A stretch of 64,000 nt of DNA, taken from Macrostomum lignano. Taxonomy: Eukaryota. Shown piece by piece: positions 48,387-55,811 of this stretch. Under the pieces are notes generated by a model. It was not told where the DNA came from. It did not search any database and worked only from the letters and a program-made list of their open reading frames with translations. The translations under genes and the position numbers were made by a program. The stretch lies in assembly GCA_002269645.1 (NCBI GenBank), contig NIVC01002523.1:1-64000 (forward strand). The letters are read 5' to 3'. Numbering within the stretch: the stretch's first letter is position 1; each line of letters opens with the position of its first letter.

Positions 48387-51300
48387 TCAGGCCATACTGC
48401 CAGATCCGTTCCCGTTGCTGCACCATGGATAGTCGCCTCCCACATTGGCCTTGCCGCTCCGGAAGCTCTCGTTATTGGCGTATTCGGCTGAGGCGGACAA
48501 ATCCGACTGATTGTCGTCGGAGGAGCGCAGCTTGATGCACAGGTTGTAGACGCAGATTGGCAGGAAGCCCAACAGGAAGCCGGGGAAGATGAGCAGTCCC
48601 AGAAAGCCCAGAGAGACACCTCCGCCGCCGGAATCTTTGTTAGTCACATTCCCGTCTCGTGGATTTGGTGTTGGCGAGTGCGCCGTCTTCGGTCTGTTGG
48701 CGCACTGCGTGTCTCTGACGCTGCACTGGGCCTTCGTGCGGCATGAGTCGCCGGCTGTGGCAGAGAAGCTGCGCTCCATCGACTGCAGCTGTTCAGCGGT
48801 CTCGGTGAAACTCGAAGAGCTGTCTCCGTCGAATAGGCCAATCTGGCGGGTGACGCATTGAGAGAATTCGTAGAGATAGAATATTGCACAAAAGGTTTGG
48901 AAATGGTTTAAACTCTACTCACGAGTAGTTGGCCACGAGTATATAGTATAAATAAGGTATTCTGTTTCGTAGGCATCTTCCCCAAGTAGTGTCAAAGGGT
49001 CAGATAACAAGTTGACAGTTGTGACAGCTGGATGACAGCGTGTCAAAACTAATTGGATTTCTGGTTCTTATCAAATAGCAATAAATTCAAGCGTACTGGG
49101 TCTATAAGGGGCCAAAAAATTAAACTCAGGACTTCTTTTTCTTTTGTGCTCTAAGGCCACACTCTTCATATTTTGTGTAAAGAAAATTTGGTTAGTTTGT
49201 TGAGGGACTGCTTTTTTCGTTAGTGAGTATGTTAACTGGTTAGTGAGCAGGTCTGTTGGTTAGTGAGCAGGTTCATTGGCTAGTGATCAGGTTCATTGGT
49301 TAGTGAGCAGGTTCATTGGTTAGTGAGCAAGTCCATTGGTTAGTGAGCAGGTTCATTGGTTAGTAAGCAGGTTAATTGGTTAGTGAGCAGGTCCATTGGT
49401 TAGTGAGCAGGTCCATTGGCTAGTGATCAGGTTCATTGGCTAGTGAGCAGGTTCATTGGCTAGTGAGCAGGTTCATTGGCTAGTGAGCAGGTTCATTGGC
49501 TAATGATCAGGTTGATTAGTTAGTAAGCAGGTTCATCATTCACAAGCGACTCACCTGAACAAAGCGATAGTCTCCCGAGCCCACCTTCCTGTACTGCCAC
49601 AGCGAGAACGGAGTCCGGCCCATGCGCTTGTCGAACACTTTCCGGTAGGACCAAGCCACTCCGTTATAGCTGCCGCTGAATCCCTGCGGCCGGGGGTCGC
49701 TGCTAGCCACGCTGCCGTACATGACCAGGTTGGCGCGCTGCAGCATGCCGCCAAAGTCGCCGGCAAAGAATGCGGGGCAGGCCGGCTCCGGTGTGGTCAC
49801 CTGGCACAGGTAGGTCATCGCTGTCAAGGTGCCAAGCACCAGGGTGGCGGTGGCGTCGATCACAAATGGAGATCGGGACTCAACTTCAGTGATGGGATGC
49901 CTCTAAAAAGTGAGCATTGGATGCAGCTAAGTTACGCTCGTACTACTGATCTCTTGAACAGATTGCATAGTCCCTAGATTAGTAAAATTATAAGTCTCAA
50001 TGATTGATTTACGATTGATTAGAATGGTATTATTTTGCTGAGCTGTTGACTTCGAGATTGAGTGCGCCGTCAAAGAGACCCATTGCAGCTGGCAAGATAA
50101 ATTTGTTAGCGTATGGTCGAACAGCCTACAGCAGGAGCGAAAGGTGCTACAGGCACCGCCCCATTTTCTGACCCTCGGCGAACCTAGCCCAAAGTTGTAG
50201 AAGCATCACCCCATGCGTAAACCACTACAAAAGCGCTACTTTTTACCAAACAACGTTTTTTACCTCGACAAGCGACTGCAAACAGGCCTGGGAGAAAGCC
50301 GGATTGCGCTGGAAACTGCCAGGCAAGTAGCATTGCTGCGCGTCTTCAAAGTACAACCGGTCCCACCGAGAGATGTTATTAGGATTCGGTGGCAGTTTTG
50401 TAAGGCTATAGTTGACAAAGGCGGCGAAGGCAGGGGCCGGAGACGAGACCAGCTGCAGGCTGAGGGTGCCCAGGCCAACGTTCTTTTTGTCAACAAAGGC
50501 CGCATCCGAGACGCCGACTGACTCGGTGGTCAGCAGGGTCAGGTAGTCAATGTCCATCTCAGCTTCCGGGTAGTTTAACAGTGAAATCAGGTCCTGCAAG
50601 CTGCTCAGGAAGGCTACGTAGCGCGCTTTGACCGACTTGAGGCTGATGATAAGGCCGCGCTTGCAGCTTTTATCATCGCCGCAATCGTAGGAAATCAGCT
50701 TGGCGATGCAGATGCCGTTCTCAGATGCTATGGCATTCATCTCGTCTCTCAAAGACATGCCATAAGCAGACGAGGCGTAGACTACGCTGATATAGTCGGC
50801 ATTGAGATGCCTGAGCATCTGCACCATTCCCTCGATGATGGCGGTGTCTGAAGAAACGGTGCGTATGACGAACGGGTACTGTCCAATGTTACTTAGTGCA
50901 GTGGACGTGGAACCGTAGCTAATGAGCGGCAGGTTGTACATCTTCAGCAGCTGGCTGGAGGCCATGGTCTGCGTGCTCGACAAAGCGCCGACAAAGCCGA
51001 CCACCTTAGTGAAGTTGAAGCCGGGCGCGGAGGCCAGGGTGCCGTCCAGCAGGCTCCCCAGACGCCGCACGGTGCAGCTGGGCGAGTAGCAGGTGTCCAG
51101 CACAACGTAGCCCCAGCGGAGCTTCTTGGTGCGCCCGTCGTGAACTCGCTGCAGCAGGTCTCTCACTCCGCGCAGGAAATTTTGGTCCACCTGCGACGTG
51201 TTGAAGCCCTGCGGCATTGCAGAGCCCTGGCTCAGCGCGTCCACTATATCGACGACGAACTTGAAGGCCATCGCAAACTCGTAGCCTCCAACTGACTTCT

Positions 51301-54300: not shown

Positions 54301-55811
54301 TAAGATGGGATTGGGACCTAGACTGAGATGGGGTTGGGATCTGGACTGAGATGGGATTGGGATCTATACTGAGATGGGATTGGGACCTAGACTGAGATGG
54401 GATTGGGATCTGGACTCAGATGGGAATTGGGATCTGGACTCAGATGGGATTGGGATCTGGACTCAGATGGGATTGGGACCTAGAATAAGATGGGATTGGG
54501 ACCTAGACTGAGATGGGGTTGGGATCTGGACTGAGATGGGATTGGGATCTATACTGAGATGGGATTGGGACCTAGACTGAGATGGGATTGGGATCTGGAC
54601 TCAGATGGGAATTGGGATCTGGACTCAGATGGGATTGGGATCTGGACTCAGATGGGATTGGGACCTAGAATAAGATGGGATTGGGACCTAGACTGAGATG
54701 GGGTTGGGATCTGGACTCAGATGGGATTGGGACCTAGAATAAGATGGGATTGGGACCTAGACTGAGATGGGGTTGGGATCTGGACTGAGATGGGATTGGG
54801 ATCTATACTGAGATGGGATTGGGACCTAGACTGAGATGGGATTGGGACCTAGACTGAGATGGGATTGGGATCTGGACTCAGATGGGAATTGAGATATGGA
54901 CTCAGATGGGAATTGGGATATGGACTCAGATGGGATTGGGATCTGGACTCAGATGGGATTGGGATCTATACTGAGATGGGATTGGATCTAGACTGAGATG
55001 GGATTGGGACCTAGACTGAGATGGGATTGAGATCTGGACTCAGATGGGATTGGGATCTGGACTCAGATGGGATTGGCATCTGGACTCAGATGGGATTGGC
55101 ATCTGGACTCAGATGGGATTGGGATCTGGACTCAGATGGGATTTTTAGTATATGGATTGGGATCTGGACTCAGATGGGATTCGGATCTGGACTCAGATGG
55201 GATTGGGATCTGGACTCAGGTGAGATTGGAATCTGGACTCAGATGGGATTGGATCCATACTTAGATAGGATTGGGATCTATACTGAGATGGGATTGGATC
55301 TAGGCTGAGATGGGATTGGGATCTAGACTGAGATGGGATTGGGATCTAGACTCAGATAGGATTGGGACCTAGACTGAGATGGGATTGGAATCTGGACTGA
55401 GATGGGATTGGGATCTAGACTGAGATGGGATTGGGATCTAGACTCAGATAGGATTGGGATCTGGACTCAGATAGGATTGGGACCTAGACTGAGATGGGAT
55501 TGGAATCTGGACTGAGATGGGATTGGGATCTGGACTGAGATGGGATTGGGATCTGGACTGAGATGGGATAGAGATCTAGGCTGAATGTTAGTAGCCCATT
55601 GATAAGATACAGTTTTTTTCAGTTTTACCCGTAAAATAAGAAGAATAACTACTTTAAAAACTGGAAGAAGGCTGCAGATGAATATGAATCTAAAAGTTCC
55701 TAAATTTATTTTAAAATAATAAACATTCCCGAATGTTACAAATTGCTTACAAATCGCCAATGCAGTCAGCAGAAAATGCAGCGCAGGAAAGCGGAAAGGC
55801 AAAAGAGCCAT
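48387..55811 (-). CDS. Single-pass membrane protein with two tandem class-C GPCR (mGluR/CaSR-like) Venus-flytrap domains, 1174 aa, 7 exons
   Basis: Exons 55811-55751, 53788-53618, 53527-53438, 52917-52712, 52456-50264, 49902-49555 and 48842-48387 are all GT-AG with matching phases and total 3525 nt. Signal peptide MALLPFRFPALHFLLTALAISASLA; VFT1 (GWSYVGLLW); CPASCPEC; VFT2 (GDIYLGVLVP, LDTC, GALSS, ISYGSTS, RTVSSD, AYG, FVIDA); one TM helix (GFLGLLIFPGFLLGFLPICVY); stop ~50 aa later. Confidence 0.88.
49235..49535. repeat. 20-bp minisatellite (GGTTAGTGAGCAGGTTCATT) in receptor intron 6
   Basis: About 15 units. Confidence 0.94.
52994..53395. repeat. (TAAC)n microsatellite in receptor intron 3
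   Basis: About 100 units. Confidence 0.98.
53878..55575. repeat. 23-bp minisatellite (GATGGGATTGGGATCTGGACTCA) in receptor intron 1
   Basis: About 73 variant units. Confidence 0.97.

Follow-up and report, generated by a model that had tools for sequence, protein, structure and literature searches.

The flatworm Macrostomum lignano has an intact, transcript-supported gene, on which purifying selection acts, for an unusual membrane protein. Judged by sequence, this protein belongs to an unnamed family of tandem Venus flytrap (VFT) proteins with a single membrane pass, which has members in molluscs, the brachiopod Lingula and the hemichordate Ptychodera. It is predicted to be a type-I single-pass glycoprotein; two class-C-GPCR-type VFTs would form its ectodomain, each of them followed by a short cysteine motif. 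We infer that the protein is not a GPCR and that it functions as a surface receptor, which probably binds amino acids and which signals or traffics via its cytoplasmic tail or a partner protein. We give this reading a probability of roughly 55%.

Gene model and surrounding locus

The gene was rebuilt on the minus strand of a 64-kb window, i.e. the whole stretch of DNA that was analyzed. It extends from the start at 55811 to the stop at 48387, exactly as in the first-pass annotation, and comprises seven exons with consistent phases; all introns have GT...AG borders. The splice path proposed in that annotation is thereby reproduced; its protein length of 1174 aa is replaced by 1178 aa, a trivial difference. 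All exons and domains below are on the minus strand. Exon 1 (55751-55811) contains the ATG and a signal-peptide-like N-terminus (MALLPFRFPALHFLLTALAI) and ends with a phase-1 donor; it is identical in an allelic copy (L002) and agrees with the GenBank model described below. VFT1 begins in exon 2 (53618-53788), which has a NAGNAG acceptor (cag/cag). The product is therefore 1178 or 1177 aa long, and the GenBank model uses the downstream AG, 3 nt further on. Exon 3 (53438-53527) and exon 4 (52712-52917) encode further parts of VFT1. The 735 codons of exon 5 (50264-52468) cover most of VFT1 (from aa 177), the linker, and VFT2 up to aa 911. Exon 6 (49555-49902) encodes the C-terminal part of VFT2, while exon 7 (48387-48842) provides the end of VFT2, a Cys/Pro stalk, the TM helix, the cytoplasmic tail and a TGA stop.

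Along its entire length (100%), the spliced protein matches the M. lignano GenBank model BOX15_Mlig019918g2 (P0001) at 99% identity; the annotation of this model is derived from RNA-seq and transcript assemblies (PMC5730564). This model carries a 'partial' flag, at the 5' end only. The L002 allele from assembly GCA_002269645.1 retains every splice site and has the identical stop codon. It differs from the gene at 32 CDS positions, corresponding to 21 synonymous and 11 non-synonymous codons; this excess of synonymous changes indicates purifying selection.

The first-pass annotation had seen no exons for a 7TM, kinase or cyclase domain downstream of the gene, and several searches agree with it. 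A Pfam scan of the minus-strand ORFs of ≥40 aa from 48230 to 28098, run on concatenated stop-to-stop ORFs, gave no match to 7tm_3, kinase or cyclase domains. A tblastn search of the whole 64-kb window with 16 class-C 7TM domains had a best E value of 0.28. The gene tables of the L002 allele and of a paralog locus list no 7TM, kinase or cyclase gene downstream, and at the paralog locus the gene ends in the same way and is followed by genes on the opposite strand. The next minus-strand gene beyond the tandem-VFT gene encodes a BAR-RhoGAP. The minisatellites that had been reported are real, and the locus is rich in repeats. An 'unrelated hydrolase' gene proposed as a neighbor could not be recovered; the nearest ORF (41126-41851, plus strand) has no Pfam family.

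Two unequal flytraps on a single helix

The signal peptide was deduced from the hydrophobic N-terminal stretch, and the topology was deduced likewise. VFT1 (51449-55748; aa ~22-516) contains introns 1-4 and VFT2 (48828-51382; aa ~539-1032) introns 5-6. They are joined by the linker ECPASCPEC (51422-51448; aa 517-525), the cysteine stub of the first-pass annotation, whose three cysteines are invariant across the family. The short Cys/Pro-rich stalk of that annotation is also found: a juxtamembrane C-x5-C-x6-C motif (48702-48743; aa 1061-1074, with Cys 1061, 1067 and 1074) is followed by a Pro-rich spacer. The M. lignano protein thus contains both the C-x3-5-C-x2-C linker after VFT1 and the three-cysteine motif before the TM. 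In an alignment of 34 family members (A1), every sequence has the cysteines corresponding to C535, C539, C542, C1078 and C1091 of P0001, and ≥90% have the one at C1084. The ectodomain of the 1178-aa protein has 11 N-x-S/T sequons and 22 cysteines.

A hydropathy scan identified aa 1103-1130 (48534-48617; VSLGFLGLLIFPGFLLGFLPICVYNLCI, followed by KLR) as the sole hydrophobic segment above threshold, and AF2 predicts a matching helix at 1123-1150 in P0001 numbering. Behind this single TM helix there is a cytoplasmic tail of only 48 aa (48390-48533), again as anticipated, with an acidic-Tyr motif, AEYANNES, at 48465-48488. The tail has no Pfam domain at all and so neither a kinase-homology nor a guanylate cyclase domain. 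Pfam finds no 7tm_3 and no kinase domain in the whole protein. NCD3G gave no match (E≤0.01) in the M. lignano protein or in 34/34 family members, which have only the three-cysteine stub.

VFT2 is a mGluR/CaSR-like module, as had been suggested. Pfam recognizes ANF_receptor at aa 625-861 (E = 1e-27), and in a sequence search of the PDB the best match was the VFT of mGluR1 (E = 1.4e-20); the best 60 matches were all class-C receptors. The AF2 model of VFT2 has a pLDDT of 85-95 and matches 1ewk_A in Foldseek with E = 2e-26 and a TMt of 0.85. Alignment with the family VFT2 by hhalign gave E = 1e-53. In mGluRs a five-residue S/T/D/Y/E signature holds the alpha-amino-acid moiety of the ligand; R78 and K409 of mGluR1 are separate from it and belong to the side-chain-selecting part of the pocket. 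VFT2 retains this signature as Ser674, Thr697, Asp717, Tyr745 and Glu825, the equivalents of mGluR1 S165, T188, D208, Y236 and D318. Conservation in the family (n = 34) is high: S occurs in 31/34, T/S in 32/34, D in 27/34, Y in 33/34 and E/D in 31/34. From these five retained residues VFT2 is the putative ligand-binding module, which fits the earlier guess that it binds amino acids; the most likely ligand would be an L-amino acid or another small zwitterion of that kind.

The N-terminal half is far more diverged. It has no Pfam match, and the PDB sequence search returned nothing relevant. BLASTP of the N-terminal against the C-terminal half was not significant (E = 0.99), the aligned motif being the canonical WxYV/GxC region, and hhalign gave no signal between flatworm VFT1 and flatworm VFT2. 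The same program aligned flatworm VFT1 with the VFT1 of the mollusc/brachiopod family members at a probability of 96.6% and E = 6e-10, as opposed to 0.011 for the family VFT2. A Foldseek search with the AF2 fragment of VFT1 had mGlu5, mGlu2/4, CaSR, GABA-B and PBP type 1 as top PDB matches (E ~3e-6); the VFT1 models are of moderate confidence (pLDDT ~70, TM-scores ~0.4) and their input alignment includes canonical VFT1 sequences. By profile alignment and predicted fold, the N-terminal half is a degenerate VFT, orthologous to the VFT1 of the family. The first-pass annotation had called it so; Pfam is blind to this half, and the support comes from hhalign and the fold search. The amino-acid signature is lost here. 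Its five positions read T, S, E, G and G in the M. lignano protein, and T/F/N, S/A/A, E/I/V, G/G/G and G/G/G in the three M. lignano paralogs. The loss affects all three paralogs, whereas the signature is kept in 24-26 of the 31 other members; in molluscs VFT1 keeps it and looks ligand-competent.

Relatives and comparable receptors

The layout, which the first-pass annotation did not recognize from any named family, is not a one-off. About 46 cluster representatives share the tandem-VFT single-TM arrangement; their VFT2 match begins near aa 550-600 and, by hydropathy, their one TM lies near aa 1000-1060. Databases already list the M. lignano protein itself as a hypothetical protein. The names of 22 representatives were checked and include bivalves, gastropods, the brachiopod Lingula and the hemichordate (acorn worm) Ptychodera. 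Sixteen non-flatworm members, scanned one by one, contain two ANF_receptor domains and nothing else; in alignment A1 ANF_receptor is the sole receptor-type domain that Pfam finds in 34/34 members. The family was found only by an index-free search, for which P0001 served as a 99%-identical query in place of the spliced protein. Word-indexed searching returned M. lignano proteins only, first for the single protein as query and again for a 34-sequence profile; it is too insensitive at ~25% identity. The closest relatives include bivalve GPCRs with 4-5 tandem VFTs, in which the linker motif recurs at each VFT boundary. The tandem VFT arrangement is ancestral.

The tails of the family have a feature in common. 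A YxxP motif occurs ≤50 aa from the TM in 26 of 46 tails, compared with 5.7 ± 2.1 expected (maximum 14 in 2000 shuffles), a test that overstates independence because the sequences sharing the motif are related. Its distance from the TM is conserved at about 10-26 aa. The short, low-complexity tail of the M. lignano copy has AEYANNES (EYANN) at this distance, with no Pro at +3; the paralog P0002 has EYDVP. Many family members have much longer tails of 200-750 aa.

Class-C GPCRs such as mGluR1/5, CaSR and T1R share with the M. lignano protein the class-C-type VFT, in this case VFT2 with its equivalents of the mGluR1 binding residues. They differ by NCD3G and 7tm_3, which are both missing from the M. 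lignano protein; unlike them, it has two VFTs per chain, one TM and a tail without G-protein-coupling machinery. In GABA-B the B1 subunit binds the ligand and B2 does not, and the VFTs reside on separate 7TM subunits. This pair of a competent and a degenerate VFT is a functional analogy for flatworm VFT2 and VFT1, but the M. lignano protein has both VFTs in one chain and no 7TM. The natriuretic peptide clearance receptor NPR-C (NPR3) binds peptides and combines an ANF_receptor-fold ectodomain of one VFT with a single TM and a tail that is short and not catalytic. The M. lignano protein resembles it in the fold of the ectodomain, the one TM and the kind of tail; it differs by its tandem VFTs and by the mGluR type of VFT2. 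The intracellular catalytic domains of receptor guanylyl cyclases, including NPR-A and NPR-B, are missing.

The Venus kinase receptors (VKRs) of invertebrates are amino-acid-activated single-pass receptors, first found in flatworms, in which one class-C-like VFT is coupled to an intracellular tyrosine kinase resembling that of the insulin receptor (PMC2680970, PMC4038586). The M. lignano protein likewise combines class-C-like VFT structure with a single-pass anchor, but it has two VFTs and no kinase. SmGBP from Schistosoma mansoni is a truncated mGluR of 488 aa with one VFT and without CRD, 7TM and C-terminal TM; it is associated with the surface membrane and has homologues in other flatworms (PMC3206071). 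Compared by description, both are mGluR-related flatworm VFT proteins without CRD and 7TM; the M. lignano protein, in contrast, is 1178 aa long, has two VFTs and conserved cysteine stubs, and continues through a C-terminal TM into a cytoplasmic tail. The first-pass view that VFTs normally sit on 7TM receptors, cyclases or iGluRs was overstated, as it omits the single-pass or truncated proteins NPR-C, the VKRs and SmGBP (PMC3206071). Tandem extracellular VFTs with one TM also occur in the bacterial sensors BvgS/EvgS, where the membrane-distal and membrane-proximal VFTs of BvgS differ in role (PMC4352136), and in trypanosome receptor adenylate cyclases, which have a cytoplasmic cyclase (PMC6027212). 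Their lineage is unrelated and their cytoplasmic part is catalytic, with a histidine kinase or a cyclase; they provide an analogy only. A literature search on tandem or 7TM-less VFT proteins yielded only SmGBP, the VKRs, BvgS/EvgS and the trypanosome cyclases. Searches on metazoan tandem VFTs, VFT proteins without 7TM and the gene identifiers found no paper describing the family, and no data on ligand, partner, phosphorylation or expression pattern for any of its members.

Proposed function and alternatives

In the reading that we favor VFT2 would be the sensing module for the L-amino acid or similar small zwitterion suggested by its signature. The flatworm VFT1 is probably its structural or allosteric partner, as GABA-B2 is for GABA-B1; the earlier idea that one chain might carry both protomers would be in keeping with a competent VFT beside a degenerate one. 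Because there is no 7TM domain, a direct output through G proteins is not expected. The output would most likely run through the cytoplasmic tail, in which the membrane-proximal acidic-Tyr-x-x-Pro motif may be a phosphotyrosine/SH2-docking site or a sorting signal, possibly acting together with a partner membrane protein that is recruited via VFT dimerization.

The protein could instead be a ligand sink, a decoy or clearance receptor that binds an amino-acid-like ligand at the surface and only buffers or internalizes it without signaling, in the manner of vertebrate NPR-C or the schistosome SmGBP. The 48-aa tail and the lack of any catalytic or 7TM domain would suit such a role; flatworms already have a characterized VFT-only glutamate-binding surface protein in SmGBP (PMC3206071), and a motif built around Tyr might serve endocytosis alone. 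Against this, the position of the motif is conserved across distant phyla, which weakens a pure decoy role, and many tails exceed what a passive anchor would require. The bulky hydrophobic residue that characterizes the classical YxxPhi endocytic signal is missing from YxxP. We regard the sink as unlikely, though worth keeping in mind. Class-C VFTs act as dimers, and a binding VFT is known to pair with a non-binding one in GABA-B and T1R. On this principle the tandem VFTs might pair by lobe 1 with a class-C GPCR or another receptor and merely modulate it, as an obligate accessory subunit; the relationship to the 4-5-VFT GPCRs with the same linker motif points the same way. Neither the window nor the allele and paralog loci showed co-variation or synteny with a GPCR gene, however, and the conserved tail motif is left unexplained, so that we consider this role quite unlikely.

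An adhesion molecule or synaptic organizer, in which the VFTs make protein-protein contacts like the amino-terminal domains of iGluR-delta and do not bind a small ligand, would be consistent with the large glycosylated ectodomain and the lost signature of VFT1. The full alpha-amino-acid signature of VFT2 across the family is hard to explain without a small ligand, and makes this explanation improbable. We give hardly any credence to an artefact, i.e. a class-C GPCR with overlooked 7TM exons or a decaying pseudogene. The repeats at the locus and the 5' 'partial' flag could raise this suspicion, but the allele shares the stop and all splice sites and differs mainly at synonymous codons, 7TM similarity is missing from the 64 kb and from both related loci, the paralog ends alike in front of opposite-strand genes, and in other phyla ~46 independent gene models likewise finish with a single TM.

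A bolder form of the receptor reading is a hitherto unrecognized class of animal chemoreceptors, in which tandem VFTs sense amino acids as an intramolecular 'heterodimer' and a tail with a YxxP motif for phosphotyrosine docking replaces the 7TM; we propose it tentatively and think it on balance doubtful. If true, the flatworm chain would hold one sensing and one regulatory VFT module, and these proteins and the bivalve GPCRs with 4-5 VFTs would jointly show that class-C VFT modules were deployed combinatorially in Spiralia. Such modules are thought to signal via an attached 7TM, or via a kinase or cyclase, as VKRs and receptor guanylyl cyclases do. A conserved multi-phylum family with two VFTs on a bare single helix and a conserved Tyr motif points to another coupling route for amino-acid sensing. 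This overturns no paradigm; family members are already in databases as 'uncharacterized'. As only VFT2 looks ligand-competent in the flatworm copies, they offer a natural experiment on the cooperation of two flytraps. M. lignano is a model amenable to transgenesis (PMC5730564), in which the protein could be knocked down, tagged or given a mutant tail.

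Gene model and allelic locus

A script assembled the exons of the tandem-VFT gene from the minus-strand sequence between 56200 and 48000. The seven minus-strand exons lie at 55811-55751, 53788-53618, 53527-53438, 52917-52712, 52468-50264, 49902-49555 and 48842-48387; all introns have GT...AG borders and the exon phases agree. This bears out the seven phase-consistent exons claimed in the first-pass annotation, with an ATG at 55811 and a TGA ending at 48387 that match precisely. The CDS of 3537 nt encodes 1178 aa, and because of a NAGNAG acceptor at exon 2 a product of 1177 aa is equally possible; both values differ only trivially from the 1174 aa given originally.

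Along its entire length, the spliced product shares 99% identity with the GenBank protein BOX15_Mlig019918g2 (P0001) of M. lignano, a free-living flatworm; identity to the paralog BOX15_Mlig025594g1 (P0002) is 68%. The genes for these two proteins are located on opposite strands of scaffold NIVC01000390.1 (assembly GCA_002269645.1), ~175 kb apart. The M. lignano annotation draws on RNA-seq processed with StringTie/TACO, on a de novo transcriptome, and on trans-splice and poly(A) sites mapped by experiment (PMC5730564). Since the annotation of the nearly identical P0001 is transcript-based, the splice path and the stop of the window gene are, indirectly, transcript-supported. P0001 is flagged 'partial' because its start is translated 5'UTR, which is readable upstream of 55811.

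The window is 98.5% identical to the allelic locus (L002), and every splice site and the stop are kept between the two alleles. The coding sequences differ at 32 positions, with 21 synonymous and 11 non-synonymous codons; judged from these counts, this is a pattern of purifying selection on the gene. Nearly all of the allelic differences (30/32) are within exon 5. The 5' part of the same exon contains a 1.49-kb tract (window 50985-52473), beginning at the exon-5 acceptor, with 96% identity to Mlig025594g1 (10991-12479 of the paralog locus, L001), while outside the tract the two genes are not alignable by blastn. The tract looks like gene conversion between these paralogs, ~175 kb apart.

Two flytrap modules and one membrane helix

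In a Pfam scan of the whole protein, the one domain above threshold is ANF_receptor (aa 625-861, E 1e-27); Peripla_BP_6 matches below threshold. The best sequence match of the C-terminal module, VFT2, to a solved structure is the ligand-binding domain of mGluR1 (E 1.4e-20), followed by mGluR5, mGluR2/3, mGluR4/7/8, T1R3 and CaSR. The AF2 model has a pLDDT of 85-95 over aa ~550-1070, and its VFT2 matches glutamate-bound mGluR1 (1ewk_A) with a Foldseek E of 2e-26 and a target TM-score of 0.85. The C-terminal half is a textbook class-C VFT, in agreement with its earlier description as mGluR/CaSR-like. A hydropathy scan found one TM-grade segment in the protein, and the AF2 model has a single long helix there; the single TM of the first-pass annotation therefore stands.

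Pfam, a sequence search of the PDB, and BLASTP with the C-terminal half all fail to detect the N-terminal half. The flatworm N-half profile, however, is collinear with a mollusc/brachiopod VFT1 profile (hhalign probability 96.6%, E 5.8e-10, 215 columns) and matches the VFT2 of these relatives far more poorly (E 0.011). The AF2 model of aa 177-545, for which the folding alignment includes canonical VFT1 sequences, shows alternating beta-alpha units at a moderate confidence (mean pLDDT 69.5). The 50 PDB matches listed for this model, of 141 at E<=0.001, have E values of about 3e-6 with TM-scores of just ~0.4; all but one, a bacterial PBP type 1, are class-C VFTs (mGlu5, mGlu2/4, mGlu8, CaSR, GABA-B). 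The profile match and the fold matches together support the earlier reading of the N-terminal half as a degenerate VFT1, as far as a model of this confidence allows.

The mGluR1 residues S165, T188, D208, Y236 and D318 reportedly hold the alpha-amino-acid moiety of the ligand, a view attributed to Kunishima 2000 and Acher & Bertrand 2005. Their equivalents, mapped by a HMMER alignment to mGluR1 and an alignment of 34 family sequences, are S674, T697, D717, Y745 and E825 in VFT2 of the window protein. At these five positions the VFT2 of the family has S in 31/34, T or S in 32/34, D in 27/34, Y in 33/34 and E or D in 31/34 sequences. The corresponding counts for VFT1 of non-flatworm members are 24/31, 26/31, 26/31, 24/31 and 26/31, and VFT1 of the three M. 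lignano paralogs has T/F/N, S/A/A, E/I/V, G/G/G and G/G/G. From this conservation, both flytraps appear to be ligand-competent in molluscs, but just one in Macrostomum, where the other is degenerate.

Relatives, cytoplasmic tail and proposed working

An index-free HMMER search returned 1830 proteins at E<=1e-3, among them the M. lignano paralogs P0002, P0003/P0152, P0004 and P0026. About 46 cluster representatives carry a lone strong hydrophobic segment, which in full-length members lies near residue 1000-1060; they are 950-1830 aa long with a VFT2 match from residue 550-600, which begins earlier in shorter, N-terminally truncated models. Sources checked include bivalves (Saccostrea, Solemya, Potamilus, Sinanodonta, Mya, Dreissena), gastropods (Haliotis, Patella, Bulinus, Lymnaea, Aplysia, Batillaria, Plakobranchus), the brachiopod Lingula anatina and the hemichordate Ptychodera flava. 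The first-pass annotation is borne out as an observation and in part as an interpretation. It was correct on the architecture and overstated its uniqueness: it had not recognised from any named family a layout which these representatives share across several phyla. Nearly all of the checked members are labeled 'uncharacterized' or 'hypothetical', and a literature search found no paper describing a metazoan tandem-VFT single-pass family or its M. lignano gene identifiers. The family is uncharacterised yet visible in databases, with class-C flytraps re-deployed without a 7TM domain.

The cysteines of the inter-VFT linker (ECPASCPEC in the window gene) are invariant in the 34-sequence alignment; two of the three stalk cysteines are also invariant, and 90% or more of the sequences keep the third. 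The linker motif is present again at every VFT boundary in relatives with 4-5 VFTs and 7tm_3. A third M. lignano paralog, P0152 (BOX15_Mlig007438g1, 1499 aa), has an extra N-terminal ~340 aa with a weak fn3 match, beyond which it has the degenerate-VFT1/VFT2/TM layout of the other paralogs.

When the family tails were anchored at the TM, an acidic-Y-[ILV/DE]-x-P motif recurred 10-26 residues past the helix (e.g., DYITP, DPYISP, DDYITPQF, QIYLTP, VYDEP, EYDVP). YxxP occurs within 50 aa of the TM in 26/46 tails, compared with 5.7 +/- 2.1 (maximum 14) in 2000 composition-preserving shuffles. At this distance the window copy has AEYANNES; its paralog has EPEYDVP. SH2 domains prefer pY-x-x-P and pY-[VIL]-x-P (Crk, Nck, Abl, PLC-gamma) or pY-x-N (Grb2), and the YxxP tails and the Tyr motif of the window copy are a lead to putative SH2 docking sites.

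Together, these results show a single-pass protein of the secretory pathway that carries two class-C-type VFTs, has no domain for catalysis or G-protein coupling, and is conserved across phyla. We infer that VFT2 binds an L-amino-acid-like ligand. In molluscs VFT1 would be a second sensor, whereas its flatworm counterpart would support VFT2 structurally or allosterically. Output may pass through the tail and its Tyr, by phosphorylation with docking of adaptors or by regulated trafficking, through a partner membrane protein, or through both.

One rival, an unlikely one, is a mis-annotated GPCR. The VFT probably functions like the ligand-binding domain of a class-C GPCR, but the protein lacks both NCD3G and 7tm_3 and so does not belong to this class. 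Minus-strand ORFs of at least 40 aa, from 48230 down to 28098, have no match to 7tm_3, kinase or cyclase, and tblastn with sixteen 7TM domains from the nearest 7TM-containing relatives detected none in the 64-kb window, L001 or L002 (best E 0.28, scattered). These searches uphold the earlier statement that no 7TM, kinase or guanylyl-cyclase exons are evident further along the minus strand; downstream of the paralog are opposite-strand genes, including a dynamin-like gene. The 16 non-flatworm members scanned one by one with Pfam, even those with tails of 400-750 aa, all have two ANF_receptor stretches and no other domain; the flatworm paralogs have one such stretch. Across the 34 aligned members, Pfam matches other than ANF_receptor are confined to Peripla_BP_6 and three weak, isolated ones.

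A pure decoy or clearance receptor, like NPR-C or SmGBP, is a further rival, as are an adhesion molecule and an accessory subunit that a class-C GPCR would need as an obligate partner. The 'VFT on one helix' logic is common to the window protein, NPR-C and Venus kinase receptors; unlike these, the window protein has two VFTs, of the mGluR type, and no kinase. Its closest functional precedent is SmGBP, a characterised, surface-located, glutamate-binding truncated mGluR from a flatworm, although the architecture is different: SmGBP has 488 aa and a single VFT, and lacks a C-terminal TM (PMC3206071). BvgS/EvgS of bacteria and trypanosome adenylate cyclases also place tandem VFTs on one TM, where the likeness is analogy only. 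The tandem-VFT single-pass receptor proposed here is testable in a tractable model and implies no change of paradigm.

Nine other relatives (P0008, P0010, P0012-P0014, P0017, P0020, P0025, P0027) are 2250-2870 aa long, with 4-7 VFT-matching stretches, no internal TM segments and then a 7TM block; an example is Sinanodonta woodiana KAL3856574.1. P0008 is from a bivalve, and Pfam confirmed four tandem ANF_receptor modules and 7tm_3 in P0010. If the gene models are right, such proteins would be multi-flytrap class-C GPCRs, of which we know no description. Two Polypterus senegalus entries, P0005 and P0016 ('CASR protein, partial', 3171 and 3927 aa), with ten VFT-matching stretches apiece, are most likely merged models of tandem V2R/OlfC-like receptor gene arrays rather than true multi-VFT proteins.

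Repeats and neighbouring genes

Minisatellites are dense at the locus, and array lengths are unequal in the window and the L002 allele. Three arrays occupy introns of the gene: a 23-bp minisatellite unit x73 (53877-55577), about 101 copies of ACTA (52993-53397) and a 20-bp unit x16 (49219-49536). A related 22-bp array is just upstream of the gene (56318-56789), and two further minisatellite arrays are downstream (44489-45216 and 45922-46543). Skewed blocks at 14000-22000 (GC skew -0.40 across 8 kb) and 36000-38000 (GC skew +0.68, AT skew +0.52 across 2 kb) are probably satellite or low-complexity arrays.

The 'unrelated hydrolase gene' named earlier as a neighbour was not confirmed: the plus-strand ORF at 41126-41851 (241 aa, signal-peptide-like N-terminus) has no Pfam family (best E 0.31) and is probably the counterpart of a 224-aa gene called in L002. 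The next same-strand gene (~28100-31500, minus strand) is a BAR-RhoGAP, in which the RhoGAP domain (Pfam E 2e-26) follows a coiled region with weak likeness to BAR; it is unrelated to the tandem-VFT finding. In the allelic locus, the upstream neighbour (L002 1-5809) encodes a nuclear hormone receptor with zf-C4 and Hormone_recep domains, and would map to the minus strand of the window beyond ~60000.
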